From positions 124,001 through 188,000 of the IMG/VR virus record IMGVR_UViG_3300001460_000004: 64,000 nucleotides of DNA; one strand, written 5' to 3'. The notes below the pieces were generated by a model, which was not told the DNA's origin, searched no databases, and was given only the letters and a program-made list of their open reading frames with translations. This document shows, piece by piece, positions 5,760-61,082 of this stretch (its first letter is position 1; every line of letters begins with the position of its first letter). A program made the translations under genes and the position numbers.

Positions 5760-6054
5760 CAATTTCAATTGTACAATTTAAACAAACAGTTTTTAAATTT
5801 AATAGATCACAATTGTTTAAATTTCCATCAACATGATAAACTATCAGTTGTGCTTTATACTTACAACTAAAACCACAACGATCACAAGTTTTCTTTTGTT
5901 GGTATCCTGCTAATTTCCAATTTGGAATTTGTGGTTTTAGTTTTTTGTCTTTACGTATACAACTATTGCACCTAGTTCGATAGTAGGTTTTTCCGTTAAT
6001 TTTGTTATTAATTGCTGCAACTTTTCGATTACATATTTGACAAAAGGGTCTCAT
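5710..6054 (-). CDS. Zn-binding HNH-like protein (start revised to 6054, MRPFCQIC)
   Basis: Multiple CxxC pairs; VYHVDGNLNNCDLLNLKTVCLNC HNH-like core; TAAATA-N5-ATG supports the 6054 start. Confidence 0.7.
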   Translation of the reverse strand: MRPFCQICNRKVAAINNKINGKTYYRTRCNSCIRKDKKLKPQIPNWKLAGYQQKKTCDRCGFSCKYKAQLIVYHVDGNLNNCDLLNLKTVCLNCTIEIAKLNLPWGRGGVLPDL

Positions 6055-6162
6055 ACGGGTATTTATCAAGCAGACCTTAATTAAGGTACCTATTAAAGCT
6101 AGTTTCTATATATATTGCATAAATATTCTATAGCAATATAACTTAGAAGGAGCGTCCTCAAT

Positions 6163-9100
6163 ATGGCACTAGTATCACCAGGCGTAGAAGTTACTACAGT
6201 TGACGAATCGAATTATTTACCAGCAGCAACGAGTTCGGTTCCGTATATTCTTGTAGCAACAGCCGCAAACAAAGCTTCAGGTACAGATAGTACTGTGATA
6301 GCACCAGGAACCACATCAGCAAATGCTAATAAAGTTTACTTAGTCACAAGTCAAAGAGATTTGGCAGCGACTTTTGGTAATCCAACTTTTTACAACACTG
6401 CGAGTGGAACACCCTTAAACGGGTATGAATTAAATGAATACGGACTGTTAGCTGGATTTAGTTCGTTAGGTGTTAGTAATCGAGCTTATGTACAGCGAGC
6501 CAATATTGACTTAGCTCAATTAACTGCTACAACTGTACGCCCAGTAGGTGCTCCTGCAAATGGAACTTACTGGCTTGATACCGGAGCATCGCTTTGGGGT
6601 CTTAAGCAGTGGAATGCAGCTACATCAACTTTTACAGATAAAACACCAATTGTAATTACTAGTGCAACACAACTTAGTGGCGGCGTACCAGCTTCAAGTA
6701 TTGGAGCACAAGGCGATTATGCAGTTGTTGCAACAAATGCAAAGAATCCAATTTACTACAAAAACACATCAAATGCATGGGTGTTAGTAGGAAGTGACGC
6801 ATGGAAAAATAGTTGGCCAACATTAGTTGCTAGCAATGCTGTCACTGGTACACTTACAGCCGCAGACGTTATTATTATTAACGGAACTTCAGTAGCAGTG
6901 CCGGCTGCCGCAAATAATACATTAACTGGTCTAAAAGATGCAATTAATAGTGCTGCAATTACAGGTGTAACAGCAACCATAGACACAAGTAACAAACTTA
7001 CATTCTTTGTAGACAGTGATGCACAATCTGATGGTAGTAGTGCAGACGGTGGTATCATTAATATTGGTACTGGAAGTACAGCTGGATTGCTAACAACACT
7101 AGGATTAGAAGCAGGCGAAACACATAATTCCCCAGCTTTGCAGCAAAGTTACAACTACACAATTCCACGTTGGAGAACTACTGATAGTTCGCCTCGTCCT
7201 TCTGGATCAATTTGGAATATGTTGTCAGCAGTAAACAATGGCGCAGATCTCAGTGTTAAAAAATATAATTCAACTACAGCAGCTTTTACAGCACAAGATG
7301 TACCTTTGTATGCAAACGATCAATCTGCACTTAAAGCTCTTGATGCTACCAATGGTGGATCAGCTATTACAGTAGGATCGCTTTATGGACAGTACAATGT
7401 AGATCCTGAAGCAAATGCTATTTCACTTTACAACAATACCGCTACATTTAAAGTTTATGAAAGATATGCAACTGGTGCGTTAAACGTAACAGGTGATAAT
7501 ACAGCATCAGTTTTTGTAGCCGCAGAAGAATTTACAATTCAAGCAAGTGCTAAAAATAGCGACACATTATCAAGTGCGGTAACTGCCGTCCTTGGAGGAA
7601 CAACATCTGCAGACTTTGTTGCCGCAGTAAGTGCCGCAGGCGTAGCAAACGTAAGTGCAAGTGTAAGTGCCACTGGTGCAATTGTTATGACACATGATGA
7701 AGGTGGAGTTATTGTTCTTAAAGACACAACTGGTACTCCAGTTGCTGATGCAGGTTTTGCAACAACAATCACAACTGGTCAAGTTAAAGCAGGTACAGGC
7801 ACAGATACTGGTGCTCTTATCCTGAGTAACTGGATTGCACTAACTTATACAGCAAGTGCAAATGCCCCAAGTTTAGATCCAACAACTGGCACTAACTGGT
7901 ACTATAGCCCAGTTGATGAAGTAGACATTATGATTCAAAGTGGTGGAGCTTGGAAAGGTTATCAAACTGTATCACTAGACACACGTGGTATGAACCTTAC
8001 TAATACTAGTCCAAATGGACCAATTGTAAGTGCCAATGCACCGTCACAACAAAGTGATAAAACTGACCTAGTGTATGGTGATATTTGGATCGACACAAGT
8101 AACTTAGAAGAATATCCAGTAATTAAACGGTATTCTTCAGTTAACAATGTTGACACATGGGTAACAATATCAAATATAGATCAAACAACCGAAAATGGTA
8201 TACTATTTGCAGACGCACGTTGGGCTGGTAACGGTAATGTTGATCCAATTACAGATGACATTCCAACAGTCAAAAGTCTATTAACAAACAGCTATACTGA
8301 TGTAGATGCTCCAAACCCAGCACTATATCCTGAAGGTATGCTATTGTTCAATACACGTCGAAGTGGCTACAATGTTAAAACATACCAAACTAACTACTTT
8401 ATTCCAACTAGCTATACTTTTGCAACTTACGCAAGCACAACTGCTTATGTATCCGGCGATCGTGTAACCTATAACGGTGGAATTTATGTAGCAATTGCAA
8501 GTACAACTGGTAACGTACCAACTGATACTTCTTATTGGGCACTATTACAGCAAGCAGCTTGGGTAACAACTGCTGGTAATAAATCAGATGGATCTCCCTA
8601 CATGGGACGGTTAGCAGTTCGACAATTGGTTGTAGCAGCAATGAAATCAGCAATTGACACAAGTGATACATTGCGTGAAGAGCAGCTGGATTTTAATTTG
8701 TATGCAACACCAAACTATCCAGAACTAATTTCTAATATGGTTGCACTTAATAACGAGCGTGACAATACAGGATTTGTTATTGGCGATACACCAATGCGTA
8801 TGGCGCCTACTAGTGCTGATATACTTGCATGGTCAGGTAATACTACTGCTTGGAATACAGGCGACGGGCTTACAACAGCAAGTGAATTTATGGGTGTTTT
8901 CTATCCTTCCGGTCAAACAAACAACGTTGACGGAAAGATAGTTGTAGTACCTCCAAGTCATATGATGTTGCGTACTGTTATACGTAGTGACGATATTAGC
9001 TTTCCTTGGTTGGCACCAGCTGGATCCCGTCGAGGGCTAATTGATAATGCACTTGCAATTGGTTACATTAATGCTTCAACAGGAGAGTTTACTAAATTCT

Positions 9101-9564
9101 CAAATGGACAAGGCATTAGAGATACTTTGTATGAAAACAAAATTAACCCAATCACGTTTATTCCGGGTGCTGGATTGCAGAACTACGGTAACAAAACTGA
9201 AGCTGCAGCATCTAGTGCAATGGATAGAATCAACGTTGCACGACTTGTTGCATATATACGTGGAAGACTTGACTCGATTGCAAGTACATTCTTGTTTGAA
9301 CCAAATGATCAAATTACAAGAAATGAAATTTCAAATGCAATAAGTGGGTTGTTGAATGATCTAGTCGCTAAACGAGGAATTTATGATTACCTAGTTGTAT
9401 GTGACTTGTCAAACAATACACCGGCAAGAATTGATCGAAATGAGCTTTATGTAGATATTGCGATTGAACCGACTAAAGCAGTTGAATTTATCTACATTCC
9501 GGTTAGAATTAAAAACACAGGCGAATTAGCAGCAGGTAATGTTGCAACTTCGCAGACAGTTTAA
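6163..9564 (+). CDS. Contractile tail sheath protein (T4 gp18-like) with large insertions
   Basis: MALVSPGVEVTTVDES start; C-terminal WLAPAG..RG, LYENKINPI, RINVARL, FEPND, VCDLSNNTP, IEPTKAVEFI. Confidence 0.95.
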   Translation: MALVSPGVEVTTVDESNYLPAATSSVPYILVATAANKASGTDSTVIAPGTTSANANKVYLVTSQRDLAATFGNPTFYNTASGTPLNGYELNEYGLLAGFSSLGVSNRAYVQRANIDLAQLTATTVRPVGAPANGTYWLDTGASLWGLKQWNAATSTFTDKTPIVITSATQLSGGVPASSIGAQGDYAVVATNAKNPIYYKNTSNAWVLVGSDAWKNSWPTLVASNAVTGTLTAADVIIINGTSVAVPAAANNTLTGLKDAINSAAITGVTATIDTSNKLTFFVDSDAQSDGSSADGGIINIGTGSTAGLLTTLGLEAGETHNSPALQQSYNYTIPRWRTTDSSPRPSGSIWNMLSAVNNGADLSVKKYNSTTAAFTAQDVPLYANDQSALKALDATNGGSAITVGSLYGQYNVDPEANAISLYNNTATFKVYERYATGALNVTGDNTASVFVAAEEFTIQASAKNSDTLSSAVTAVLGGTTSADFVAAVSAAGVANVSASVSATGAIVMTHDEGGVIVLKDTTGTPVADAGFATTITTGQVKAGTGTDTGALILSNWIALTYTASANAPSLDPTTGTNWYYSPVDEVDIMIQSGGAWKGYQTVSLDTRGMNLTNTSPNGPIVSANAPSQQSDKTDLVYGDIWIDTSNLEEYPVIKRYSSVNNVDTWVTISNIDQTTENGILFADARWAGNGNVDPITDDIPTVKSLLTNSYTDVDAPNPALYPEGMLLFNTRRSGYNVKTYQTNYFIPTSYTFATYASTTAYVSGDRVTYNGGIYVAIASTTGNVPTDTSYWALLQQAAWVTTAGNKSDGSPYMGRLAVRQLVVAAMKSAIDTSDTLREEQLDFNLYATPNYPELISNMVALNNERDNTGFVIGDTPMRMAPTSADILAWSGNTTAWNTGDGLTTASEFMGVFYPSGQTNNVDGKIVVVPPSHMMLRTVIRSDDISFPWLAPAGSRRGLIDNALAIGYINASTGEFTKFSNGQGIRDTLYENKINPITFIPGAGLQNYGNKTEAAASSAMDRINVARLVAYIRGRLDSIASTFLFEPNDQITRNEISNAISGLLNDLVAKRGIYDYLVVCDLSNNTPARIDRNELYVDIAIEPTKAVEFIYIPVRIKNTGELAAGNVATSQTV

Positions 9565-9606
9565 CTGGATAAATAGTATTAATAATACGATAGGAGATAA
9601 AAAAAT

Positions 9607-10257: not shown

Positions 10258-10276
10258 TACGAGGCTTTAACTCAGC

Positions 10277-11747: not shown

Positions 11748-11750
11748 CTT

Positions 11751-13280: not shown

Positions 13281-13296
13281 AATATAGGATACTAAC

Positions 13297-20030: not shown

Positions 20031-20050
20031 TAAAGTAGATAAGTACATGT

Positions 20051-21613
20051 ATGAACAGTACAGATCTCAGTTTAATAAAAACAGCCCATAAAAAAACATC
20101 ATTTACACAAGAAGAAATTGATGATTTCCGAGCTAGTGCTGATCCAGTAACTGGCCCGGATTTTTTCTTGAGTAACTTTTTCTATATACAGCATCCCGTT
20201 CAGGGTAGAATAAAATATCAACCTTTTGACTATCAAAGAAGGTTGACAAATGTTTATCATAATTATAGATTTAGCATTAGTTTAATGCCAAGGCAAACTG
20301 GTAAAAGTACAACAGCTGCCGGATATTTGTTATGGTATGCTATGTTTATTCCTGATAGTACTATTCTTGTTGCTGCACACAAGTTTTTAGGCGCACAAGA
20401 AATTATGCAACGTGTGAGATATGCATACGAAAGTTGTCCTGATCATATACGTGCAGGGGTGGTAAGCTACAACAAAGGTAGTATTGAATTTGACAACGGC
20501 AGTCGTATTGTAAGCCAAACTACTACTGAGAATACCGGACGTGGTATGAGTATATCTTTAATGTATGCAGACGAGTTTGCATTTGTGCGTCCAACTATTG
20601 CTAAAGAGTTTTGGACTAGTATTAGTCCCACTCTAGCAACAGGTGGTAAAGCAATTATTACTAGTACGCCTAACAGTGATGAAGATCAATTTGCATTTTT
20701 ATGGAAAGGTGCAAACAAGTGTTTAGATGAACACGGCAATGCAACAGAAGTTGGACAAAACGGTTTTAAAGCATTTAGGAGTTTTTGGGATGAACATCCA
20801 GATCGTGATGACAAATGGGCACAAGAACAACGTGCTGCATTAGGAACTGATCGTTTTCGTCGAGAAATGGACTGTGAATTTATTATTAATGATGAAACAT
20901 TAATTGCTCCAACTACCCTAATTGATTTAGAAAGCGAAGACCCACTGTATAAAACTGGCGAAGTACGTTGGTATCGCAGACCAGAACCAAATAAAATTTA
21001 TGTTATCGGACTTGACCCTAGTCTAGGAACTGGTGGTGATCCTGCTGCTATACAAGTGTATGAAGCTAACAGTACTGTGCAAGTAGCTGAATGGTGCCAT
21101 AACAGAACTGATATACCTACCCAAATTCGGATACTTTCTGATATTATAACAGCAATAAATGTAATAGTTAAAAATCCTCAAAGTATATACTATAGCGTTG
21201 AAAACAACAGTATAGGAGAAGCCGCATTGATTAGTATTAATGAATACGGTGAAGAGAATATCCAAGGTTACTTTTTAAGCGAATCTGGATCTAAAAATGC
21301 AAGTCGTTTTAGAAAAGGATTTAACACTACTCATAAAGTAAAGTTAGCAGCTTGTAGTAAGTTTAAAAACTTAGTTGAAAGTAAAAAGATGCGTATCAAC
21401 AGTGCTGGACTTATAAGCGAACTTAAAAACTTTGTAGCATTAGGAACAAGTTATTCAGCAAAAACTGGAGAACATGATGATCTAGTTATGTCTACATTAT
21501 TAGTTGTTCGGATGTTACAAATATTACAAACTTATCACGTAGAATTAGACACACAAATGAGAGATCACAATGACCCATCGCAAGAACCTTTACCCTTTAT
21601 CATGTCAATGTAA
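20051..21613 (+). CDS. terL: Terminase large subunit (T4 gp17-like)
   Basis: PRQTGKST Walker A, YADEFAF Walker B, TSTPN, GLDPS, VENN, HDDLVM nuclease motifs. Confidence 0.95.
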   Translation: MNSTDLSLIKTAHKKTSFTQEEIDDFRASADPVTGPDFFLSNFFYIQHPVQGRIKYQPFDYQRRLTNVYHNYRFSISLMPRQTGKSTTAAGYLLWYAMFIPDSTILVAAHKFLGAQEIMQRVRYAYESCPDHIRAGVVSYNKGSIEFDNGSRIVSQTTTENTGRGMSISLMYADEFAFVRPTIAKEFWTSISPTLATGGKAIITSTPNSDEDQFAFLWKGANKCLDEHGNATEVGQNGFKAFRSFWDEHPDRDDKWAQEQRAALGTDRFRREMDCEFIINDETLIAPTTLIDLESEDPLYKTGEVRWYRRPEPNKIYVIGLDPSLGTGGDPAAIQVYEANSTVQVAEWCHNRTDIPTQIRILSDIITAINVIVKNPQSIYYSVENNSIGEAALISINEYGEENIQGYFLSESGSKNASRFRKGFNTTHKVKLAACSKFKNLVESKKMRINSAGLISELKNFVALGTSYSAKTGEHDDLVMSTLLVVRMLQILQTYHVELDTQMRDHNDPSQEPLPFIMSM

Positions 21614-21624
21614 TAAATAACATT

Positions 21625-22971
21625 ATGGATAACTCAAGTAACAATATGTTGTTTAACCTTTTGGTAACAAAAGGATTTGAACCAGAACTATTAGATATTA
21701 GTGGTAAACCTATCACTAATCCTACTGAAGCAGAAATGTTTAGCTTTGAATATCGCGGTGACGAAAAAAATTACGGCACAGTTGTTATTTTGCTAGGCAA
21801 AGAAGGAGACTTGCAGGTTTTCTTTGGAGACAATCTTGGCAAAACAATGGAACTTGGAGACAAGGACGAATGGTATGATTTTCTTGCACAGATTAAAAAA
21901 TTTGCCACTCGTAATTTGTTAAACTTTAAAGTTAACAACATTAACAAACTAAAGTATACCATGCAAGGAATAGCAGCAATTAATGAGGGTCTGTTTGAAG
22001 GTCAGTACTATGGCAAAAAAGATGTTAGCTACAATGGCCCTAAGGATGGTGCTAGATTAATGATCAAACACAAAAATCCAATTGGGGAAAATGGCAAACG
22101 ATATACTCAAGTTGATAAGTTATACGTAGAAAATTCAGAAGGCGAAAGATTTAAGCTACCTTTTAAAAATATTTTAGGTGGAAAAATAATGACTCGTCAT
22201 GTTAAAAATGGCGGAACTCCTTACGATGCATTAGGTACTCATATTAATGATATGATGGAAGAAATGAATGTGTTAGGAAAATTTATTAATGCTACACGTA
22301 ATAAAACATACGAAGATGCAGGAAATGCTATGGTGGAAACTGCTATCCAGCATTATAAAAAACTAAAGAGTAAAGCTAAAAAAATGGTCAGTGACAGAGG
22401 ATATGCCAGAGCCAAACATGACTTTGATCCCGGTAAAATACATGAGAGTGAAATTGCAACAGAGGTATTAAAGAGATATTTTGTTGAACAATCAATTGAT
22501 CAACGCATTGAAGAAGCACTACCGATGCTTGCACGTTTGGGCATAGCCTCAGCGGCAAATAACGTAGGAGAAGAAAAAATGAAAGAAGTAAATGAATTTA
22601 GTGAATGGGTTGAAGATGTAACCGAAGGGACTTGGGCTGTTCCAGAAACACGTGAAGAAATAAAAGCACTTGAACAACTACTAGCGGAACCATTAATTTT
22701 AGGACCAGATGCAACCAACGCAACCAACGCAATTTACGGATACATTGGTGATGATGAATTGTTTGATACACTATACGAGTTATCACTTGATAATCCTGAT
22801 GCAGATGCAAGACCTGCTATTATAGCTCGTTTAGAAAATATGGGAATTGACATTAACATAGATGATCGTCCAGTAACACCAAATGAAGATTTAGACACTG
22901 ATGGTGTTATGATGACTACCCCAAGTAATATGAGCAGCGAGTCTCTTAAACGTTTAGCTGGAATGCTATAA
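21625..22971 (+). CDS. Hypothetical late protein, probably virion/prohead-associated
   Basis: 448 aa; leaderless late promoter; ends LKRLAGML. Confidence 0.7.
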   Translation: MDNSSNNMLFNLLVTKGFEPELLDISGKPITNPTEAEMFSFEYRGDEKNYGTVVILLGKEGDLQVFFGDNLGKTMELGDKDEWYDFLAQIKKFATRNLLNFKVNNINKLKYTMQGIAAINEGLFEGQYYGKKDVSYNGPKDGARLMIKHKNPIGENGKRYTQVDKLYVENSEGERFKLPFKNILGGKIMTRHVKNGGTPYDALGTHINDMMEEMNVLGKFINATRNKTYEDAGNAMVETAIQHYKKLKSKAKKMVSDRGYARAKHDFDPGKIHESEIATEVLKRYFVEQSIDQRIEEALPMLARLGIASAANNVGEEKMKEVNEFSEWVEDVTEGTWAVPETREEIKALEQLLAEPLILGPDATNATNAIYGYIGDDELFDTLYELSLDNPDADARPAIIARLENMGIDINIDDRPVTPNEDLDTDGVMMTTPSNMSSESLKRLAGML

Positions 22972-25737: not shown

Positions 25738-26284
25738 TACTGCTGGGATTGGACTAGCATTAAGTGAAGAATTATCATATCGTGGACATGACATTGTTGG
25801 ATTAAGCAAGCGTAATGGTTATAACATTCGTATTACACCTAAAATAGTTGATTTGATTAAACAGTGTGATATGTTTGTTAACAATGCCCAAGTTGATTTT
25901 GCACAAACACAGTTACTATACGGAGTTTGGAAATGTTGGCAAGAATGCCCTGGTAATATAATTTGGAATATTAGTACAATGCTAACACAATGTCCAAGTA
26001 CTACTGATATAACAGATCTTGATCCAGTTGATATGAATATGTATCGCAATCAAAAACTTGCACTTGAGGATGCACACAACCAATTAAAATTTTTTGGGCA
26101 TGGGCCAAAGATGTGTTTGATTAAACCTGGTAATATACAGACACACTCAGGAAAAACAAATGCATGTAACACCACAGTGTGGGCAAAAACTGTTGTTGAC
26201 ACATATGTAACAGCACATGCACAAGGTATGCATCTTGAAGAAATAAGTATTGGATGGTTAAGCAATAAGGATAACCAAATTTAA
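25715..26284 (+). CDS. Short-chain dehydrogenase/reductase
   Basis: ITGDTAGIG, FVNNA, NIS, YRNQK (YxxxK), IKPG. Confidence 0.85.
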   Translation: MKIAITGDTAGIGLALSEELSYRGHDIVGLSKRNGYNIRITPKIVDLIKQCDMFVNNAQVDFAQTQLLYGVWKCWQECPGNIIWNISTMLTQCPSTTDITDLDPVDMNMYRNQKLALEDAHNQLKFFGHGPKMCLIKPGNIQTHSGKTNACNTTVWAKTVVDTYVTAHAQGMHLEEISIGWLSNKDNQI

Positions 26285-37806: not shown

Positions 37807-37864
37807 AAAGTTATTTAGTGACGTTTAAATGCAGTAAATATGTTTTTAGAAGGCAAAAATTTAT

Positions 37865-41673: not shown

Positions 41674-41745
41674 ACCGGGATGATACTTACACGTTTCTAG
41701 CTCCTGAGTCATCCCGGTAACCTTGGAGTGAAATACTCCACAAGG
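41674..41745 (+). ncRNA. Candidate structured 3' UTR / small RNA (two hairpins, anti-SD loop)
   Basis: ACCGGGATGA/TCATCCCGGT stem enclosing CTAGCTCCT; second stem CCTTGGAGT..ACTCCACAAGG. Confidence 0.4.
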
Positions 41746-41777
41746 GGTACTAGTTTAATACTAGTACCTCTTTTTTT
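41744..41777 (+). terminator. Intrinsic terminator
   Basis: GGGGTACTAGT-TTAAT-ACTAGTACCTC followed by T7. Confidence 0.85.
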
Positions 41778-41791
41778 GATTAAATAATGAT

Positions 41792-42937
41792 ATGATCTTC
41801 TGTCATGCTCCCTGGACAAATATTGATATTAACCAACAAGGCACAATAGCACCTTGTTGTAAGTTTCGTCATGTTCATTACAATGAATCTGAATACAATA
41901 TTTTTGATCATTCTGTGGAACAGTATATTGAAAGCGATACATTAACTTCAGTTAAAGAAGATTTCAAACAAGGTAATTGGCCAATTGGGTGTATACGTTG
42001 TAAAACAGAAGAAGAAAACAGGATACCAAGCAAAAGGCAAATGGATTATAAACGTTGGCAATCGGTGTTAGACTCTCGTGACTTAATCAAAAAAGAATTT
42101 ATAACTAGTAGTATTGCATTTGGAAATACATGCAATCTTAAATGTATTACATGCAGCAGCTGGGCTAGTAGTCGGTGGCACAAAGAATATAAAGACTTAA
42201 CTGGTATGGATATTAAACCAGTACACTTTCGTAAAAATAAATTTGTAGAAGAGTTTGTTAAATGGGCACCTGATATGTTGCACATTGACATTCCAGGCGG
42301 TGAACCATTTTTAAGTGGTGTACCAGCACAACATCAATTATTAGACTACTATATTACAACAGGCAAAGCTCAACACATGACATTGCACTATACAACAAAT
42401 GTTACAATTTGGCCTAATGACGAATGGTGGACTAGATGGCAACATTTTAAAAACGTAGAAATACAATTGAGTTTGGATGGTATTGATCAACAGTTTGAAT
42501 ACATTAGACATCCGGCAAACTGGAATACAGTATTACAACACATCAAACAATACCAAACCAAACAGATAAAATACATTAACGTTGAGCTAAGTGTTGCCCA
42601 CACTGTAAGTGCATACAATGTTTATTACCTTGACAAGTTTTATGCATGGTGCGAAAGCGTTGGGTTACCAAAACCTTGGTGCGGCAGAGTACATGATCCA
42701 AATGAAATGCGTCCAACTGTTTGGCATGGTAAAGCCAAGCAAGCTATAATAAAAAGATTATATAAAAGTAAATTTATTGATGTAAGGAAATGGGCTCAAC
42801 TGATGTTAGAAAATGATGACAGTGAGCATTATGATGCATTTGTAAAACGTACGGCATGGCATGACCAATACCGCGGCACAAACTTTTCAAAAATTTTTCC
42901 TGAAATGTCTGAATATCTGTTGACACATGCGTCCTAA
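41792..42937 (+). CDS. Radical SAM protein with N-terminal twitch/SPASM-like Cys cluster
   Basis: FCHAPW...PCC...GCIRC; CNLKCITC; GGEP; SLDG..FEYIRHP. Confidence 0.9.
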   Translation: MIFCHAPWTNIDINQQGTIAPCCKFRHVHYNESEYNIFDHSVEQYIESDTLTSVKEDFKQGNWPIGCIRCKTEEENRIPSKRQMDYKRWQSVLDSRDLIKKEFITSSIAFGNTCNLKCITCSSWASSRWHKEYKDLTGMDIKPVHFRKNKFVEEFVKWAPDMLHIDIPGGEPFLSGVPAQHQLLDYYITTGKAQHMTLHYTTNVTIWPNDEWWTRWQHFKNVEIQLSLDGIDQQFEYIRHPANWNTVLQHIKQYQTKQIKYINVELSVAHTVSAYNVYYLDKFYAWCESVGLPKPWCGRVHDPNEMRPTVWHGKAKQAIIKRLYKSKFIDVRKWAQLMLENDDSEHYDAFVKRTAWHDQYRGTNFSKIFPEMSEYLLTHAS

Positions 42938-42948
42938 TAACGTATAAT
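42920..42948 (+). promoter_or_regulatory. Perfect-consensus sigma70 promoter, 6 nt before an ATG
   Basis: TTGACA-N17-TATAAT-N6-ATG. Confidence 0.8.
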
Positions 42949-42954
42949 AATTAT

Positions 42955-43737
42955 ATGTCAAAAAAAGTATTAGTAACTGGCTGTAGTATGACCCGAGGGC
43001 ATGGATTACGCAATGAACAAGACGATAAATGTCTATGGGTCAATGCATTGTTACCTAACTGTATAATTAACAATTATGCAGTTGATGGTGCAAACAACTA
43101 TAGTATTTTTATGCAAACTCTTGCACACTTACGACAAAACTATTATGATGTAGTATTAGTTGGCTGGAGTGCAATACCTCGTTGGTGTTTTAATGTTGGA
43201 CTTGAATTGTATCAAACACACACTGTACTTAGAGATGACGGACACAGTATAAACACAAACGACGGTGGACATTTTACTAGCAAATGGTTAGGCGAAACTG
43301 GTGACCGACTACGTAAAATACAAAACGATCACTGGGATCTATTAGACTTAGTTGCATTTGTGAATGTAATACGTGACATTCAAGTTACAATGAGAGGTGG
43401 TAAACTTGTATTTGTTAACACCCTTGGGCCATGGCCCAGTGAATACTTTGAAAGAAAAAACATTTCATTACCAGACGAACTAGACGAATTTGAAAAAGTC
43501 ATGTATAATATAAACAATAGAGATGATGAAGAAATATTAACCTTGTACAATAAAGTTCACGACGACTACAAATACAATGGCGGAATTCGTAGTGAATTGT
43601 GGTTGAACTTGTACAACAGTTTAGCATCTCTACAACAAGACACGGTAAGTGCAGAAGATTTACATCCTGGGTATGCTAGCCAAGCACATTATACTGATGC
43701 TTTTAAAAATAAAATTGATCGGATGATTGCAGAATGA
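42955..43737 (+). CDS. SGNH/GDSL-like protein
   Basis: TGCSMTRG (block I), NYAVDGANN (block II), DLHPG (block V). Confidence 0.65.
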   Translation: MSKKVLVTGCSMTRGHGLRNEQDDKCLWVNALLPNCIINNYAVDGANNYSIFMQTLAHLRQNYYDVVLVGWSAIPRWCFNVGLELYQTHTVLRDDGHSINTNDGGHFTSKWLGETGDRLRKIQNDHWDLLDLVAFVNVIRDIQVTMRGGKLVFVNTLGPWPSEYFERKNISLPDELDEFEKVMYNINNRDDEEILTLYNKVHDDYKYNGGIRSELWLNLYNSLASLQQDTVSAEDLHPGYASQAHYTDAFKNKIDRMIAE

Positions 43738-46041: not shown

Positions 46042-46493
46042 GTGAAAAACTAAACATAGCAAATGAAATGCGATGTGTGGATCAAAAAGATCGAGCCTTC
46101 TATGACAGTTTGACTGACGAAGAAAGAAAAAAGTTTTCAAACTTTCTTATGATACGGTGGAGTAGTTGTGTTAGCGGTGGTCGAGAAATGCAAGAGTACT
46201 ATGTACAAAGTTGCAATCATTTTTTAAACAAACATTTTTTTACTATTAACAAACATCCTAAACTACAATGGTTATGTGCTACAGCTATTAGTCCAGGAAT
46301 GGGAACGCATCGACACAATTGGATAAGCCCTAAAAAGAAAAATAAAGGAACTGATGCAAAGGTTCGCAAAATACTTTTACAAGAATTTCCTAATACAAAG
46401 TCTGATGACTTAGATGTACTATTAAAAATAAACAATTTAAAAGATGTACGAGCGTTTTTAAAAGAACGAGGGCATGATTCTAAAAGTCAGTAA
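46038..46493 (+). CDS. Possible clamp-loader small subunit (gp62-like)
   Basis: FLMIRWSS...N...HPKLQW...RHNWI pattern and size resemble gp62; weak. Confidence 0.45.
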   Translation: MSEKLNIANEMRCVDQKDRAFYDSLTDEERKKFSNFLMIRWSSCVSGGREMQEYYVQSCNHFLNKHFFTINKHPKLQWLCATAISPGMGTHRHNWISPKKKNKGTDAKVRKILLQEFPNTKSDDLDVLLKINNLKDVRAFLKERGHDSKSQ

Positions 46494-47220
46494 TATTGTA
46501 TTCAAACCCTTTATTACGTATGCGTTCTAATACAGTATCAAATACAGTACCATCATCCCCAATAGATATTAGTATTACATTAGGAGATTGGTAAGTTAAT
46601 CCGGTTAAACGCCCGTCCTTTAAGGCACAATTTATTAATTGATGATCATGTGGACCAAACCAAAATTGATTTTGTATTTCTTCTTCAGAATTGGCTATTA
46701 TCTCTAACCGTTTTCCACTAGTTGCATGTGGTAAAAGTGATCGGCAGTGCAAGTGTATCCGACTTTCAGTTCCATAATTTTGTGCAGTATGTGTTAAGCC
46801 AGTGTCCATTAAACTCCAAACACCGTTAACAGGCATATGGTGTATAGTTTGATTATCAAAGTCCATCATAACAGCTAGTGGATTTGTAGTAATAGCTAAG
46901 TGATACCGATCATCTTGATCACTGTGGGCACCGTAATACCTACGTGGATCTAGTTTTCTTAAATAGGCACCACCAACTGGTCCTAATAAATTTAATGCAT
47001 CTCCAACAGGAGTATTTTCAAATTCTGGTAACAACACATATGGATCGTTTACATTTAAATTGGCTCCTGGTTTGACAACTGCATCGCTACCATCTGGGGC
47101 AGTGTTTACTTTGTATGCCCATCCATTGTCTTTACCATTTGCCCATGGCATATTTAACACTTGCTCTATGAGCAAAGCTGTGTTAATATTAGCTAAGTGT
47201 GTTAGAGGTGTGAGTAGCAT
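46480..47220 (-). CDS. 2OG-Fe(II)/cupin oxygenase (Asp/Asn beta-hydroxylase-like); start revised to 47220
   Basis: HSD..RYHL...HTAQN...RIHL facial-triad pattern; TAAGTA-N5-ATG at 47220. Confidence 0.7.
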   Translation of the reverse strand: MLLTPLTHLANINTALLIEQVLNMPWANGKDNGWAYKVNTAPDGSDAVVKPGANLNVNDPYVLLPEFENTPVGDALNLLGPVGGAYLRKLDPRRYYGAHSDQDDRYHLAITTNPLAVMMDFDNQTIHHMPVNGVWSLMDTGLTHTAQNYGTESRIHLHCRSLLPHATSGKRLEIIANSEEEIQNQFWFGPHDHQLINCALKDGRLTGLTYQSPNVILISIGDDGTVFDTVLERIRNKGFEYNITDF

Positions 47221-47238
47221 GTTAGTACTTATTAAGAA

Positions 47239-50903: not shown

Positions 50904-51607
50904 TGAAAAAAATTGTAAGTTTTGGAGATAGCTATGTTTGGGGCGATGAATTAATTGATCCTAAATTAGCAACACAACCTGATGCACATCCAGTGTTGAT
51001 TGAAAATACCAAATACAGAGAACAAAACTGTTATACGGGTTTGTTGGCCAACAGCTATGGTATTCCATACGAAAACTTTGGAATACCAGGTGGAAGTTTA
51101 CAAAGCACAGTTTGGACATATCTTTGGTGGCTTGATAATGAAAAACTACCCATTGAAGATTGTTTAGTTCTAGTTGGACTTACTGAACCTGGTAGGCACA
51201 GTTTTTATAATCCAAAGCATCGTGTGTATCCAAATGATACAGATTGGAATCGTTTTGTACACAGTAGCTGGATACATAGTAACAATAGCAGTGACAATGA
51301 ACAGTGGCATGAACTTGTTAAGTTACACACAGTATTGACAGATTGTCAAGCGTTAAGAGATCTAACACTACATACCACTCAATTGTTTTTTGAAAACACA
51401 CAACATTCACATCCTGTGGTACAATTTTTTACATTGAATCACACAGCTACTAAACCATACTCCACATTGTGGAATTCTACACAAAGCCTACGTGACTTAA
51501 CCCTGTCACCAAAATTACAAAAACCAAATGGTCATCCCAACGAAATTGGACATAAAATTATAAAAGAAGTCTTGCAAGAATACATATACCGTGCTATACT
51601 AAGTTAA
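50903..51607 (+). CDS. SGNH/GDSL-like protein
   Basis: FGDSYVWG, NFGIPGGS, GHPNEIGH. Confidence 0.7.
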   Translation: MKKIVSFGDSYVWGDELIDPKLATQPDAHPVLIENTKYREQNCYTGLLANSYGIPYENFGIPGGSLQSTVWTYLWWLDNEKLPIEDCLVLVGLTEPGRHSFYNPKHRVYPNDTDWNRFVHSSWIHSNNSSDNEQWHELVKLHTVLTDCQALRDLTLHTTQLFFENTQHSHPVVQFFTLNHTATKPYSTLWNSTQSLRDLTLSPKLQKPNGHPNEIGHKIIKEVLQEYIYRAILS

Positions 51608-52560
51608 TGTTAAATGCAATTGAATTATTTCCAACTGGTAAACAAACCAGTAGTGGCTGGTACAGCTACAATGCTCCTTGTTGTGTACACAATGGAGAAA
51701 ATGCCGATCGACGCAAGCGTGGTGGACTAAAGCCACGTGACAATGGTTGGAGTTATCATTGTTTTAATTGTGGATATACTGCTAGTTTTACAATTGGTAG
51801 ACAAGTAAGTTTTAAAGCAAGACGCTTACTGTCCTGGTTTGGTGTTGATAGTTCTGATATTGATAGATTAAATTTAGAAAGTCTACGCCAACGCAGTTTA
51901 TTGGATGCAATTGATCAACAACCCAAACGTAAAATAACATTTGATTTTGCAGAAAAACAATTGCCAGATGGGTGCTCTAACCCAACAGAACAAACAAATG
52001 AATACATAATTAATCGTGGCATACATCAAGTGGGTTTTCCTTTTTTAAGTTATAAAAGAGGACCAAGACTTGGTATTGTAACTCCGTTTACGTACAACGA
52101 CACGATAGTAGGAAGTAGTATACGTTTCCTAGATGATCGTATACCTAAGTATATTAACGATAAACCACAAGGATATGTTTTTGGTATAGATTTGCAACGT
52201 AATAACTGGGAACATGTATTTGTAGTTGAAGGTGTATTTGATGCGTTGTCAATACAAGGTGTTGCTGTGTTACATGACGATGTAAATGATGCACAAGCTG
52301 AACTCATCAACAATTTAAGACGTAGTGTAACAGTAATACCTGACCAAGACAACGCAGGTGTAAAACTAATAGACCGTGCAGTTGAACTAGGTTGGGCTGT
52401 AAGTATACCAAAGTGGCCCAACAACGATATCAAAGACGTAAATGACGCAGTTGTAAAATATGGAATGACAGCAACAATGATTTTTATAATGCAAGCACGT
52501 AATACAAGTAAAATTAAAATTGAATTAGCAAAAAAAGCATTGGTTAGGAAGTTAAAATGA
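51607..52560 (+). CDS. DNA primase (zinc finger + TOPRIM; gp61-like)
   Basis: PCC...YHCFNC, PKY, VEGVFDA, PDQD, KDVND. Confidence 0.9.
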   Translation: MLNAIELFPTGKQTSSGWYSYNAPCCVHNGENADRRKRGGLKPRDNGWSYHCFNCGYTASFTIGRQVSFKARRLLSWFGVDSSDIDRLNLESLRQRSLLDAIDQQPKRKITFDFAEKQLPDGCSNPTEQTNEYIINRGIHQVGFPFLSYKRGPRLGIVTPFTYNDTIVGSSIRFLDDRIPKYINDKPQGYVFGIDLQRNNWEHVFVVEGVFDALSIQGVAVLHDDVNDAQAELINNLRRSVTVIPDQDNAGVKLIDRAVELGWAVSIPKWPNNDIKDVNDAVVKYGMTATMIFIMQARNTSKIKIELAKKALVRKLK

Positions 52561-53977: not shown

Positions 53978-54831
53978 TATTACCTAAGTTAGTTATTCCC
54001 AGTAGAATTAATCAACATTGGATAGAGAGTGGAATGGACTCGTACGATCTCTGTGTTGACAAAAAACATTTTAAAAAATACCCACACACTGTAAAATATT
54101 ATTACAACAGCCGTGGTTTTCGTGACCGTGAATGGCCTAACTCAGTAGATGATTGCATATGGTGTGTTGGTGATAGTTTTACAGTAGGGTTAGGGGTACC
54201 ACATGAACACAGCTGGAGTTATATACTAGGGGAACGTTTGAATAAACGCACAATAAATGTTAGCATGGATGGTGCTAGCAACACATGGATACGCAGGCAA
54301 GCTGTACAAATACTAGAACTACAACCCAAGTTACTAATACTACAATGGAGTTACATCACTAGACGAGAAGCAACTATGGATCAATTGTGGCAAAAGTTCT
54401 ACGATAGTGTGAGAGATCCAAGTTGGCCAGAATGTAAAACCTATGCACAAATTTCAGAGTTACCCGAGTGGATAAGAACTGAACTTGAAACAGTGCATAA
54501 CTGTAGCAATGTTATGGAAAACATCGACGATACTAATAAGCGTCTACGTTATACTCATACCAGCGACGAACAAGACAAAGAACATTTATACGATCAAATT
54601 ACACAAGTTGAAAGTGCAGTAGATTCAACTTTATTAATACATAGTTTTGTGCCTCATTTTAGTCCAAATGGATATGCTGTTCCCATTCCTAAAAGTATAC
54701 AACCAAGACATATACCTGAAATAACTAAATTAGATCTTGCTCGGGACGGTCATCACTATGATCGGTTAACTGCTGAACATTTTGTTGATCAGTTGGAGAA
54801 TTTAATAACTGAGAACAGTGCCATTTCCTAA
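53974..54831 (+). CDS. SGNH-like protein with an inserted DPxWP module
   Basis: YNSRGFRD, VGDSFTVG, NVSMDGASN, RDGHH; FYDSVRDPSWPEC insertion. Confidence 0.7.
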   Translation: MILPKLVIPSRINQHWIESGMDSYDLCVDKKHFKKYPHTVKYYYNSRGFRDREWPNSVDDCIWCVGDSFTVGLGVPHEHSWSYILGERLNKRTINVSMDGASNTWIRRQAVQILELQPKLLILQWSYITRREATMDQLWQKFYDSVRDPSWPECKTYAQISELPEWIRTELETVHNCSNVMENIDDTNKRLRYTHTSDEQDKEHLYDQITQVESAVDSTLLIHSFVPHFSPNGYAVPIPKSIQPRHIPEITKLDLARDGHHYDRLTAEHFVDQLENLITENSAIS

Positions 54832-55936
54832 GTTCTTCGGATTCTTTTACAGCACTATCATCGCTGTTGTATGGCTTACCTATCCCGTTTTCTGCAACCC
54901 ATTCGTTATACCAACCAGCAACTTCATCAAAGTTTTTAATCATTAATTTTTTTTCAGCCATAGTTTGTAATTTTATAGGCATTCCGGTTACTAATGCACC
55001 ACGATCGGTTAGCTCTTTGATTGCTAGAAAACTTTTGGTGTATGCTTTGCTATTGTTTAACAAGTACTGTTGATCAGTATTGCTTAAACTTTGAATAATA
55101 CCATTACGAGTGCTAGTATCATCTGGCACACTTAATTGAAAGTTTGGTTTGTTACTTTTATCTTCTAACAGCAATGTTGGTTCTACTTGTTTACTAAGTC
55201 CACTTATATCTCCCAGCAAGTAATGACATCGATTCCAGTCTTCAAATTCAATGCCAAATATATCATTCCAGTTACGTTTTTCTTGATGATTAAAGCAAGG
55301 TAATTCTAAACAAAATTCTTCAGCTCGAGGCATGTCTTGCTCGTAAACAAAGTAACTACCAACAGTAAAATATTGATCTACCCACTCTAAGTATTTTGCA
55401 TAGTCTTGAAGATATTTTATTAAACTCATGCGAGGAACTTTAATTTTTATACTGTAAAGGTCTTCGTAGTAATCTGCTTTATCTAATGGGTTGTAAACAT
55501 TAAGTTTGTCACTGCGGGTTACAATAACCCAACTTAGTGCATGTTCAAACAAATTTTCTCTTTGGGCACTAATAATATAAAAATGTTCATTTAGATATTT
55601 GTAAAATTCAACTTGTTGTGCAATTGGGTCATTGCGATTGCGAATATGATATTGTGCTAATCTGCTAGTTTTATAATGATCTACACTGCTTAGTAAATCT
55701 GTTATTTCGCTAAGTGTTTGATGATATCCTCTAGGTTGGTCAATTCTTTCTGGCTTTCCAAGAATTTCACTATTGTATTCTGGGCTAAAGTATCGTATAA
55801 TACCATTAGTAAGTTCGTGTAAGTTTATTACTGGACGATCGTATTTGTGTGCATTCATTAAAATAGTCAGTAATCTTTGCAAAAAAGTACTGCCAACTCG
55901 ATCTGGAGTTAATATTAATACATTGTTATGGTTCAT
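54725..55936 (-). CDS. Sulfotransferase-like (Stf0-like) protein
   Basis: LTPDRVGSTFL, LHE, RENLFEHALS, YE. Confidence 0.55.
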   Translation of the reverse strand: MNHNNVLILTPDRVGSTFLQRLLTILMNAHKYDRPVINLHELTNGIIRYFSPEYNSEILGKPERIDQPRGYHQTLSEITDLLSSVDHYKTSRLAQYHIRNRNDPIAQQVEFYKYLNEHFYIISAQRENLFEHALSWVIVTRSDKLNVYNPLDKADYYEDLYSIKIKVPRMSLIKYLQDYAKYLEWVDQYFTVGSYFVYEQDMPRAEEFCLELPCFNHQEKRNWNDIFGIEFEDWNRCHYLLGDISGLSKQVEPTLLLEDKSNKPNFQLSVPDDTSTRNGIIQSLSNTDQQYLLNNSKAYTKSFLAIKELTDRGALVTGMPIKLQTMAEKKLMIKNFDEVAGWYNEWVAENGIGKPYNSDDSAVKESEELRKWHCSQLLNSPTDQQNVQQLTDHSDDRPEQDLI

Positions 55937-55986
55937 GATAATATTTATAACTACCCTAACTGCCCCAGGCTATAAGTAACACTGCA

Positions 55987-57249
55987 ATGAGCAAACTATT
56001 CCCTGGAAAAGAAATATTCCCTGTTAACTCGCCAACTGCTTGTATGTTAAAATGGAGTTGGAGTACAATAAACCTGCAGGATGCATACACTAGTAGTTGT
56101 CACCGGGTAGAAGGTGAATATTTTGATATTGAACAATTTGATAATTTTCATAACTTACCTGAGAAAATCCTTGCAAGAGAAAAAATGCAACAAGGTATTT
56201 GGCCAGGCAAAGGATGCGAGTATTGCGAACGTGTTGAATGTGCCGGCGGCATCAGTGACAGGACAATGACACTAGAAAGGCAACACACCCGAGATAAAAT
56301 ACCACCTGAGTTGCATGACAACCCCAATGCCACACATGTAACACCTACAATACTCGAAGTGTACTTTAATAATACGTGTAATATGAGTTGTGTGTATTGT
56401 GCACCAAGTGTAAGTAGTCAAATAAATGCAGAAGTTACAAAGAATGGTGGTTTCAGTGTAGGTAACATGCATGTTGAACCTTTTGTTACTAACAACACAA
56501 GGCAAAAACTATTAGTAGAAAAACTTTGGAAGTATCTAAGTACTAACAATCGATATCAACACATACGGCACTTTAATATATTGGGTGGTGAACCATTATT
56601 ACAACAAGAGTTTGATCAGTGCATACAATTTTGGAATGACCATCCCAATCCTAGTTTAACTATTAATTTAGTGAGCAATTTAAACTTTGATCCTAAATTT
56701 TTTAAAAACAGAATAAACCAACTGCGCCAGTTAGTTGATGAATATAAAATATTTCAAGTTGAAATTACTGCAAGTTTAGATTGTTTAGGACCAGAGCAAG
56801 AATATGTTCGCCGTGGACTAAAACTACAAGACTATTGGGTACCAAACTTTGAATTTTTATTACAACAAGATTGGATCAAACCCAGTGTACACAGTTGTAT
56901 AAGTAGTCTCACAATTAAAACATTTGATCAATTAGTCAACAAACTTAACAGTTGGAACCACCAATACAATACTACAATAGATCATTCGTTTGATGTAGTA
57001 GTGGGGAAAAGTTGGCAAGAAATTGCTATGCATCCTATGTTTTTTGGACCTGGCGTATTTGACGAAGATTTTGATCGAATAATTCAAGCTATGCCACAAG
57101 GACACAGTCGACAACACATGCAAGGAATTGCTGATAGTATTCAAGCCGCCCAACGTGATGAAGTTAAAATAAACCAGTTAAAACAGTATTTACGGATACT
57201 AGACACTAGAAGAAATACAGATTATACAGAATTATTTCCTTGGCTTTAG
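55987..57249 (+). CDS. Radical SAM protein with N-terminal twitch/SPASM-like Cys cluster
   Basis: CMLKW...SCH...GCEYC; CNMSCVYC; GGEP; SLD..QEYVR. Confidence 0.9.
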   Translation: MSKLFPGKEIFPVNSPTACMLKWSWSTINLQDAYTSSCHRVEGEYFDIEQFDNFHNLPEKILAREKMQQGIWPGKGCEYCERVECAGGISDRTMTLERQHTRDKIPPELHDNPNATHVTPTILEVYFNNTCNMSCVYCAPSVSSQINAEVTKNGGFSVGNMHVEPFVTNNTRQKLLVEKLWKYLSTNNRYQHIRHFNILGGEPLLQQEFDQCIQFWNDHPNPSLTINLVSNLNFDPKFFKNRINQLRQLVDEYKIFQVEITASLDCLGPEQEYVRRGLKLQDYWVPNFEFLLQQDWIKPSVHSCISSLTIKTFDQLVNKLNSWNHQYNTTIDHSFDVVVGKSWQEIAMHPMFFGPGVFDEDFDRIIQAMPQGHSRQHMQGIADSIQAAQRDEVKINQLKQYLRILDTRRNTDYTELFPWL

Positions 57250-57293
57250 AAGTCATATTACAATAAATACATTTAGACAAAAGAGGTAGTGAC

Positions 57294-57551
57294 ATGCAGA
57301 GAAAGACTAAAAGCATACTTGAAGAATTAGATAGTATCTATAAAGATAAGTATGCCAATATTGACCGCCAACAAACTATTAACAATAGGGCAAATCATGT
57401 TATTGCTAGTGCAATTCGTCTTTTAGAAGATTTTGAAACTCATTATAATGATGAAGATGCTCAAAAATTGCAACGCAAATTGCTCAATGCTATTCGGACC
57501 AAAGAACAAACTAAATTTACAAACACAATGAGACGAGTAAATGTCAAGTAA
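57294..57551 (+). CDS. Small helical hypothetical late protein
   Basis: TAAATA and GAGG upstream. Confidence 0.7.
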   Translation: MQRKTKSILEELDSIYKDKYANIDRQQTINNRANHVIASAIRLLEDFETHYNDEDAQKLQRKLLNAIRTKEQTKFTNTMRRVNVK

Positions 57552-60065: not shown

Positions 60066-60134
60066 GTTTTGCTCAACTGGGCTAAATAAAAGTAGGACTT
60101 AAATTAAAGAGTCCACAAACTTAGGAGAAATACA

Positions 60135-60602: not shown

Positions 60603-60623
60603 GCTAGTAATTAACTAAACTTT

Positions 60624-60654
60624 AAAGGCTCAGTTTTTACTGGGCCTTTTTTTT
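60624..60654 (+). terminator. Intrinsic terminator
   Basis: AAAGGCTCAGT-TTTT-ACTGGGCCTTT followed by a T tract. Confidence 0.85.
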
Positions 60655-60671
60655 GTGCGTTAAATACTGTT

Positions 60672-61082
60672 ATGCATACTATCACACTTTATACACGTTT
60701 TGACATCACGTATACTGGAATCAGACAACATCATAGTAAACTGATACCGACTACAGATCGCAGCGGTTATGAAATTTCTACACTGTTACAATTTAATGTT
60801 AGTCGTAGTCAACAAAGTAATTGGGAAACAATTAATCAACTTATAAGTTTACGTACATTACCGGATAACATCAAAGATCCAGTAGTGGACACAGTTGATG
60901 GTAAAAAAGTGTGGAGATTTAGCTTTGATGTATCAAATCTTGATGCAATTGGCTCAGAAGACACTCCACTTAGTATGTTAATTGGCGATTGTAAAGGTAC
61001 ACCATTTATAACGGGACTTACAGAAGAGACTTCTGATATTACTATCTCAGATAAAAACACTTGGTTTAAGATAAGTAATTGA
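60672..61082 (+). CDS. Hypothetical late protein
   Basis: TAAATA-N5-ATG. Confidence 0.7.
   Translation: MHTITLYTRFDITYTGIRQHHSKLIPTTDRSGYEISTLLQFNVSRSQQSNWETINQLISLRTLPDNIKDPVVDTVDGKKVWRFSFDVSNLDAIGSEDTPLSMLIGDCKGTPFITGLTEETSDITISDKNTWFKISN

Follow-up and report, generated by a model that had tools for sequence, protein, structure and literature searches.

A T4-type late promoter core fused to the start codons of predicted leaderless genes in an uncultured giant phage

In an uncultured giant T4-like phage and its relatives, the six-nucleotide core of the T4-type late promoter (TAAATA or TAAGTA, hereafter TAARTA) lies exactly 5 nt upstream of the ATG of about 15 genes that, with one possible exception, have no recognizable Shine-Dalgarno (SD) sequence. 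These genes are therefore most likely transcribed as leaderless mRNAs starting at the A of AUG, an inference that rests on sequence analysis alone. We examined a 64,000-nt window (positions 124,001 to 188,000 of IMG/VR record IMGVR_UViG_3300001460_000004), the 230-kb contig containing it, and related loci and genomes. An initial annotation of the window had reported eight TAARTA-N5-ATG sites without an SD sequence, as well as two sigma70-type promoters ending 6 nt before an ATG. All ten of these sites were confirmed.

Placement of the hexamer relative to start codons

On the plus strand the motif starts at 20040, 21614, 41781 and 60661, with the corresponding ATGs at 20051, 21625, 41792 and 60672. 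On the minus strand it starts at 6065, 37817, 47231 and 55947, with ATGs at 6054, 37806, 47220 and 55936. None of the eight has an SD core of 4 nt or more at 4–13 nt. A ninth match at 33796 (+) lies antisense inside a minus-strand gene and opens only a 50-codon ORF, and hence is probably due to chance. The bare pattern count in the window was not significant; 9 matches were found against 4.36 ± 2.24 in dinucleotide shuffles, and 6 of 100 shuffles reached 9. However, the placement of the motif was highly significant. In the whole contig, ORF-opening ATGs at a spacing of 5 numbered 16, compared to a mean of 1.83 at spacings 0–30 (Poisson P = 1.4e-10). The absence of a genome-wide peak at 5 nt had been named beforehand as an outcome that would refute the proposal, and this outcome was not observed.

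Of the 15 gene starts in the contig, 14 have no SD core of 4 nt or more at 4–13 nt, while one has AGGT at 10 nt. All 15 use ATG, 13 are the first start codon of their ORF, and 14 have a pyrimidine at −1; the only GTG/TTG match is an internal codon. Pooling 38 N5 sites from three genomes, the −1 base was T in 24, C in 12, A in 2 and G in none, which is the usual pyrimidine(−1)/purine(+1) start preference. The hexamer was also specific in sequence. Of all TAAATA, TAAGTA and TAACTA occurrences, 6.0%, 3.0% and 1.6%, respectively, lie at N5 before an ORF-opening ATG, whereas every other single substitution gave 0.9% or less. Only A, G or C is tolerated at position 4. The distribution of spacings at gene starts was bimodal, with distances of 4–6 nt or at least 16 nt; spacing 8 occurred once and spacings 9–15 were unused. 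Predicted folding energy of the first 30 nt did not differ from that of SD-led genes.

In the window, the minus-strand site at 6052–6065 (TAAATA) starts a 114-aa Cys-rich protein (gene 5710–6054). Orthologues keep TAAATA-N4-ATG (related locus L132) or TAAGTA-N5-ATG (related locus L135), and L132 has no upstream in-frame start. The site at 20040–20053 (+, TAAGTA) starts the large terminase gene TerL (20051–21613). TAARTA is kept at exactly N5 in 33 of 78 TerL orthologues, or in 26 at N5 plus 9 at N4, N6 or N7 after removal of identical contexts, while a few orthologues carry GGAG or GGTG instead. The site at 21614–21627 (+, TAAATA) starts a virion structural protein gene (21625–22971), 11 nt after the TerL stop, and 58 distinct orthologous contexts keep TAAATA at N4–N7. 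In Phosso, Atu_ph07 and XaC1 the same gene has TAAATA plus an SD leader, suggesting that the short spacing in this clade is derived. The site at 37804–37817 (−, TAAATA) precedes a heptose-phosphate nucleotidyltransferase-like gene (37048–37806), the first gene of the minus-strand block 31473–37806. It is divergent from a gene at 37865 (+), which has its own TAAATA at 37835 followed by a 24-nt leader.

The site at 41781–41794 (+, TAAATA) starts a radical SAM gene (41792–42937). The site at 47218–47231 (−, TAAGTA) starts an Asp/Asn-hydroxylase-like gene (46480–47220), and only 18 nt separate its ATG from the divergent ATG at 47239, whose gene is full length against phrog_11058. The 77%-identical orthologue of the hydroxylase-like gene is 246 aa and has TAAATA-N5-ATG. 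The site at 55934–55947 (−) contains the full T4 octamer TATAAATA at N5 and starts a 403-aa protein of unknown function (54725–55936). The site at 60661–60674 (+, TAAATA) starts a 136-aa protein of unknown function (60672–61082). The initial annotation had held that the motif corrects two ORF starts, and both corrections are backed by the orthologues.

The two sigma70-type promoters have their own spacing. The first (42920–42957, +) consists of TTGACA (42920–25), 17 nt, TATAAT (42943–48) and 6 nt before ATG 42955 (gene 42955–43737, function unknown), a 12/12 consensus match. The second (51572–51609, +) consists of TTGCAA (51572–77), 17 nt, TATACT (51595–600) and 6 nt before ATG 51607 of a primase gene (51607–52560; phrog_47). 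As this ATG overlaps the upstream stop codon (TAATG), translational coupling is an equally good explanation at this site. Sigma70-type promoters at N6, their own canonical distance to +1, were found in 3 cases here, 5 and 5 in two relatives, and 0 in T4.

Late promoter identity, genomic context and conservation

Several observations support the reading of the hexamer as a T4-type late promoter core. In T4 the late promoter box TATAAATA occupies −13 to −6 (PMC2988020), so that TAAATA plus 5 nt places the A of ATG at +1. A gp55-type sigma factor is encoded at G000:C1:81652-82647 of the phage genome, matching phrog_12791 (E = 1.6e-73), phrog_234 (2.5e-23) and T4 gp55 (9.5e-6), and was found in all 5 relatives tested. 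The motif is 3.6 times denser in non-coding DNA. It also occurs 16–45 nt upstream of SD-led genes, preceding tail sheath, tail tube, adaptor, endolysin and virion protein genes. For example, at 6120–6165 (+) TAAATA is followed by a 37-nt leader containing AAGGAG and then the ATG of the tail sheath gene (6163–9564); similar leadered forms lie before 1596, 9607, 13297, 19503, 50124 and 61831. No conserved column was found upstream of −12 in the 15 sites, consistent with the absence of a −35 element. The two upstream bases of the octamer are not conserved; only 2 of the 15 sites (window 55947; genome 8766) have the full sequence, and position −12 is A in 8 of 15. Searches with T4 gp33, T4 gp45, PF02916 and PF09116 returned no hit in a contig that is only about 66% complete, for proteins that diverge fast.

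The positions of the motif are also consistent with a promoter. An intrinsic-terminator-like hairpin of 13 pairs with a T-run (41742–41778, +; −18.3 kcal/mol) ends 2–3 nt before the motif at 41781, and another of 11 pairs with a T-run (60624–60655, +; −15.9 kcal/mol) ends about 5 nt before the motif at 60661. The terminator stems occupy the space of a −35 element at these two sites. Over three genomes, terminator hairpins ended 2–8 nt before the motif at 7 of 73 sites, compared to 6 of 612 control starts. Moreover, 8 of the 15 genes are heads of divergent units, against 30 of 246 other genes (Fisher P = 3e-4).

To determine whether the arrangement is conserved, 625 kb of 80 related loci were examined. 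ORF-opening counts were 14, 58, 22 and 45 at spacings of 4–7, against about 1 elsewhere, in 15 gene families on both strands. Two near-complete related genomes (G001 and G002) showed the same peak. Although the exact N5 spacing holds in this genome, the relatives vary between N4 and N7; either the start site shifts or leaders of 1–3 nt are tolerated, and such leaders reduce leaderless translation in model bacteria. T4, PA5oct, Atu_ph07, Phosso and XaC1 did not show the peak, and the cultured relatives had no excess over a reversed-pattern control.

Interpretation and alternative explanations

The most likely explanation for these results is that TAAATA, with G (or, in relatives, C) also tolerated at position 4, is the −10-type core of this phage's late promoter, read by host RNA polymerase carrying the gp55-like sigma factor and needing no −35 element. 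In this view the promoter is used in two layouts. In about 45 genes it lies 16–45 nt upstream of the ATG and the transcript would carry a normal SD leader. In about 15 genes, eight of them in this window, it lies exactly 5 nt upstream; transcription would then start at the A of ATG, and the 5'-terminal AUG would presumably be bound directly by ribosomes, as in other leaderless mRNAs. A few sigma70-type promoters would do the same with N6. Our analysis establishes the motif, its spacing and sequence specificity, the lack of SD sequences, the gp55 homologue, the conservation in relatives, and the positions relative to terminators and divergent genes. The 5' end of the RNA, the late, replication-coupled timing and the mode of translation are inferred. 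We hold this explanation with reasonable, though not full, confidence. The initial annotation had proposed that transcripts start at the A of AUG from a compact 11-nt element supplying both timing and translation, and this interpretation is supported by every computational test we could apply. Its suggestion that new genes could thereby be plugged in on either strand is only indirectly supported.

An alternative is that TAAATA is a real late promoter that matters little for these genes, which would be expressed mainly from read-through transcripts and translated by coupling or re-initiation after the upstream stop, or by S1-dependent binding to A/U-rich RNA, with the short distance reflecting genome compaction only. 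The genes at 20051 and 21625 follow same-strand genes by 20 and 11 nt, so read-through transcripts also exist there. In addition, genes with neither an SD nor the motif have a median gap of −1 nt to the upstream gene, indicating that coupling is common in this genome. However, a start codon overlapping or abutting the upstream stop was found only at 51607, 8 of the 15 genes have no upstream same-strand gene, and two follow terminators directly. Compaction also does not explain a single preferred spacing, the empty 9–15 nt zone, or the pyrimidine at −1. We consider this alternative unlikely.

It is less likely still that the hexamer is an RNA-level translation signal, i.e. a non-SD, A/U-rich ribosome-binding element as in Bacteroidetes-type genomes (GeneMarkS-2 group B). 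Its fixed short distance from the ATG would suit such a role, and A-rich non-SD motifs about 9 nt upstream are known (PMC6028130). However, it precedes only 15 of 262 genes (about 6%), while most genes have GGAG-type SDs; five of its six positions tolerate no substitution; and it is enriched at unit heads rather than inside operons. It also matches the T4-family late promoter core in a phage that encodes gp55, and 16–45 nt upstream of SD-led late genes it cannot act as a ribosome-binding site. Chance co-occurrence in an AT-rich genome is effectively refuted by the spacing peak and its replication in relatives with 41–47% GC, despite the weak window count and the 15 such strings in T4, which open mostly very short frames and, judged without the T4 gene table, look internal.

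A more speculative possibility, which we regard as doubtful but not excluded, is that the leaderless genes form a separate translational class in a whole clade of uncultured jumbo T4-superfamily phages. The 11-nt element (late promoter core plus spacer) would then be a self-sufficient expression signal, often packaged as terminator-TAAATA-N5-ATG, allowing accessory genes such as radical SAM enzymes, hydroxylases and sugar nucleotidyltransferases to be inserted in either orientation. It would also keep them translated independently of SD pairing late in infection, for example if the phage or the host stress response alters canonical initiation.

Late transcription in the T4 family has been a model system for decades, and all known late mRNAs there carry leaders. 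A large environmental clade of jumbo phages places the same promoter core at zero-leader distance from many start codons. If confirmed, our interpretation would show that gp55-type holoenzymes drive leaderless mRNAs. It would also define one of the smallest complete expression signals known, 11 nt without a −35 element or ribosome-binding site, which is useful for synthetic biology. Furthermore, it gives a simple rule for fixing gene starts in these genomes, and points to hosts, probably Alphaproteobacteria, whose ribosomes handle leaderless mRNAs well.

Comparison with known systems

The closest system is the T4 late promoter (TATAAATA; gp55, gp33 and gp45 dependent). The core TAAATA, the absence of a conserved −35 element, the gp55-family sigma factor, the occurrence on both strands, the association with structural genes and the distance to the predicted +1 are shared. 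S-PM2 uses NATAAATA (PMC2984593). In T4, ORF-opening ATGs lie 13–29 nt after TATAAATA, with a peak at 28 and none at 12 or less, so T4 late mRNAs are leadered and carry an SD, whereas here a third class is predicted to have zero leader. The present motif further differs in its unconserved upstream bases, in allowing G or C at hexamer position 4, and in that gp33 and gp45 homologues were not detected in the incomplete contig. A viral late promoter motif merged with the start codon also occurs in poxviruses (TAAAT at the initiator, often overlapping the start codon as TAAATG), but the polymerase is unrelated and poxvirus late mRNAs gain a poly(A) leader by slippage, making this an analogy only.

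The phage carries an alphaproteobacterial-type tmRNA, from which the likely host class was judged, although the host itself is unknown. Caulobacter crescentus has hundreds of leaderless mRNAs, which strongly prefer AUG and lose about 2-fold per added 5' nucleotide (bioRxiv 10.1101/2020.05.06.081141). This matches the 15 of 15 ATG starts and the sharp N5 spacing, whereas the relatives tolerate N4–N7. In lambda cI mRNA from the PRM promoter and other sigma70-driven leaderless phage mRNAs, a −10 hexamer lies 6 nt before the ATG, as at 42955 and 51607, and the mRNA starts with AUG. Those are single regulatory genes in temperate phages; here the layout recurs in a virulent-type jumbo phage and is coupled to late promoters. 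Finally, in leaderless genes of Actinobacteria and Deinococcus (GeneMarkS-2 group C) a −10 box lies 6–8 nt before the start codon of SD-less genes that are first in their operons, a signature accepted as predictive of leaderless transcription (PMC6028130). The arrangement described here shares a −10-type box at a fixed short distance, the lack of an SD and the position of the genes as first in their operons, but the spacing is N5, the box would be read by a phage late sigma factor rather than the housekeeping sigma, and it is found in a virus and only in a minority of its genes.

The phage contig and the motif sites

The 230,036-bp IMG/VR viral contig (bases 124001-188000 of which form the window) has 36% GC and was estimated by CheckV to be about 66% complete. 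Its large terminase (TerL) belongs to the T4 superfamily, with Pseudomonas phage PA5oct as the best cultured match at 52% amino-acid identity, followed by Sinorhizobium phage Phosso and Agrobacterium phage Atu_ph07. A megablast search of 6 kb against cultured phages found no match at the DNA level. The contig carries a two-piece (permuted) tmRNA of the alphaproteobacterial type (RF01849, 132 bits) at contig positions 15197-15581, outside the window (positions 291-639 of locus L137), with tag ANDNYAPAMAIAA, as well as tRNA-Trp, tRNA-Ser and tRNA-Pro. The tmRNA suggests an alphaproteobacterial host, with low-GC freshwater or marine Alphaproteobacteria as candidates. No alternative genetic code was needed.

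The initial annotation had claimed eight TAARTA-N5-ATG sites and two sigma70-type promoters ending 6 nt before an ATG, and this observation was confirmed, with all eight sites and both promoters present at the stated coordinates. The first sigma70-type promoter consists of TTGACA, 17 nt, TATAAT, 6 nt and the ATG at 42955, a 12/12 match to the consensus, and the second consists of TTGCAA, 17 nt, TATACT, 6 nt and the ATG at 51607, which starts a primase gene. Two further sigma70-type promoters abut start codons outside the window, at contig positions 52992 (-) (TTGACT, 17 nt, TATAAT, N6, ATG) and 19507 (+) (TTAACA, 18 nt, TATAAT, N7, ATG). A ninth TAAATA-N5-ATG match at 33796-33809 (+) lies antisense inside the minus-strand gene 33178-34092 and opens an ORF of only 50 codons. 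This match is probably due to chance, although it could be an antisense late start. The divergent partner of the 55936 gene, a radical-SAM-like gene (55987-57249), has TAAGTA 8 nt before its ATG and no SD (55973-55989, +), and may be a near-leaderless case that was not listed in the initial annotation.

Position and identity of the TAARTA hexamer

The bare pattern count in the window was not significant, as 9 matches were found against 4.4 ± 2.2 in shuffled sequences. The signal is instead positional. In the whole contig, ATGs opening 60 or more codons lie at spacing 5 from TAARTA 16 times, whereas the mean at spacings 0-30 is 1.83 (Poisson P = 1.4e-10). Our gene model of 262 genes contains 15 gene starts of this type. 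Fourteen have no SD core and one has a marginal AGGT, all 15 use ATG, and 13 are the first start codon in the ORF. Position -1 is T in 11 and C in 3 of the 15.

The contig encodes a gp55-family late sigma factor at 81652-82647 (phrog_12791, E = 1.6e-73; T4 gp55, E = 9.5e-6). This protein is 331 aa, compared to 185 aa in T4, and the similarity to T4 gp55 starts only in the second half, indicating an N-terminal extension. TAARTA is 3.6 times denser in non-coding than in coding DNA, and about 45 genes have the hexamer 16-45 nt upstream followed by a clear SD. In the window these include the genes for the head-tail adaptor (1596), tail sheath (6163), tail tube (9607), virion proteins (13297 and 61831) and endolysin (19503). 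The hexamer therefore behaves as the late promoter core of the T4 family, for which T4 uses TATAAATA and cyanophage S-PM2 uses NATAAATA (PMC2984593), although only 2 of the 15 sites have the full octamer. Searches with T4 gp33, T4 gp45, PF02916 and PF09116 gave no hit, in a contig that is about 66% complete.

Several features of these sites support the inference that the transcripts are leaderless. The T4 review places the first T of the box at -13, such that the box spans -13 to -6 (PMC2988020), and TAAATA plus five bases therefore puts the A of ATG at +1. The sigma70-type promoters that abut start codons use N6, their own canonical distance, with 3 cases in this contig, 5 and 5 in two relatives, and none in T4. 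At gene starts the hexamer spacing is either 4-6 nt (18 genes) or at least 16 nt, while spacing 8 occurs once and spacings 9-15 never, as expected if a leader must either hold an SD or be absent. In 38 N5 sites from three genomes the -1 base is a pyrimidine in 36. Scanning of single substitutions showed that 6.0% of TAAATA, 3.0% of TAAGTA and 1.6% of TAACTA occurrences lie at N5 before an ORF-opening ATG, whereas all other variants gave 0.9% or less.

The genomic context of the sites was also examined. Terminator-like hairpins with T-runs at 41742-41778 and 60624-60655 end 2-8 nt before the motif. Over three genomes this arrangement holds for 7 of 73 such sites, against 6 of 612 control starts, and any promoter for the downstream gene must then lie within the last 15 nt or so. 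Eight of the 15 genes are heads of divergent units, against 30 of 246 other genes (Fisher P = 3e-4), and at 47220/47239 the two start codons are only 18 nt apart. Folding energy of the first 30 nt did not separate leaderless-type from SD-led genes (P = 0.44, 0.13 and 0.10). As both classes are unstructured, this comparison does not discriminate between them.

Relatives, controls and start codon assignments

A scan of IMG/VR with TerL returned 80 loci at 70-80% identity. Of 78 TerL orthologues, 33 keep TAARTA at exactly N5 even though the flanks and the five spacer bases differ. Most of the others have the motif shifted by one base, and a minority have GGAG/GGTG instead. Pooled over 625 kb at 45% GC, ORF-opening ATGs at spacings of 4, 5, 6 and 7 number 14, 58, 22 and 45, against about 1 elsewhere, and they fall in 15 gene families on both strands. 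Two near-complete relatives show the same. G002 (316 kb, 47% GC) has 15 at spacing 5 and 7 at spacing 7, and G001 (342 kb, 41% GC) has 8, 11, 7 and 6 at spacings 4-7. All five relatives tested encode the gp55-like sigma factor. The exact N5 is thus a property of this genome, whereas the clade uses N4-N7, implying either some flexibility in start-site choice or leaders of 1-3 nt. In the N4 class of several relatives (G001 and G002), the hexamer is flanked by short inverted repeats, for example GCGG-TAAATA-CCGC-ATG, such that the promoter would sit in the loop of a potential hairpin.

In T4, used as a control, TATAAATA is followed by ORF-opening ATGs only at 13-29 nt. The small excess of TAARTA-N5-ATG strings in T4 (15) is not convincingly at gene starts. 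These strings open mostly very short frames and do not look like gene starts. PA5oct, Atu_ph07, Phosso, XaC1 and T4 show no excess over a reversed-pattern control. The gene after TerL has TAAATA plus an SD-containing leader in Phosso, Atu_ph07 and XaC1, whereas in this clade the same gene has TAAATA 4-7 nt from the ATG. The leaderless layout, as inferred here, is therefore derived and specific to this clade.

The initial annotation had also proposed that the motif corrects two ORF starts, and both corrections are supported. For the gene starting at 6054, the alternative start is a TTG at 6069 with an apparent TAAGG. However, this TAAGG is part of a perfect 12-nt palindrome, CCTTAATTAAGG, located at 6073-6084 on the minus strand just upstream of the TAAATA and conserved in a 58%-identical orthologous locus (L132). 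The palindrome could be an operator or a hairpin, and it mimics an SD for the TTG. Orthologues at 51-58% identity have TAAATA-N4-ATG with no upstream in-frame start (L132) or TAAGTA-N5-ATG (orthologous locus L135). For the genes at 47220 and 55936, a search for related loci returned only 100%-identical copies. IMG 3300037558 and 3300037672 carry identical contigs, and Logan runs SRR29965055, SRR29965061 and SRR29965062 carry a 77% relative. The 47220 start was settled by searching for homologous proteins and the contigs encoding them. The 77%-identical homologue is 246 aa, and its locus has TAAATA-N5-ATG and no ATG in the upstream extension. The public gene call for the window's own protein is also 246 aa.

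Leaderless interpretation and known systems

The initial annotation interpreted the sites as starts of leaderless late genes, and our computational results support this reading. The motif sites, their spacing and their distribution are established by the analysis, whereas the 5' ends of the transcripts and their leaderless translation are inferred from sequence alone, and late timing is inferred from homology and gene content. Several leaderless-type genes encode enzymes rather than virion parts, namely radical SAM proteins, a nucleotidyltransferase, a hydroxylase-like protein and a metallophosphoesterase. At least four radical SAM genes are present (26284-27429, 41792-42937 and 55987-57249 in the window, and 7546-8766 in the genome), together with a heptose-phosphate nucleotidyltransferase-like gene (37048-37806), a glycosyltransferase gene (37865-38584) and an Asp/Asn hydroxylase-like gene (46480-47220), which looks like a large modification or glycan-building gene set. 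Of the alternatives, translational coupling is an equal explanation at 51607, where the ATG overlaps the upstream stop codon, and the genes at 20051 and 21625 also sit on inferred read-through transcripts. A generic A/U-rich translation enhancer is not consistent with the sequence specificity of the hexamer, which is far too high.

We found no report of leaderless late genes in T4-like or jumbo phages, although only open-access papers were searched and this result is not proof of absence. The PA5oct study lists only sigma70-like promoters and no leaderless genes, and no leaderless transcript was detected in phiKZ. The late promoter core of the T4 family and leaderless transcription are each already known, and it is their combination, inferred here in silico, that is new. 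A -10 box 6-8 nt before start codons is an accepted signature of leaderless transcription (PMC6028130), and in Caulobacter leaderless mRNAs need a 5' AUG and lose about 2-fold per added nucleotide (bioRxiv 10.1101/2020.05.06.081141).
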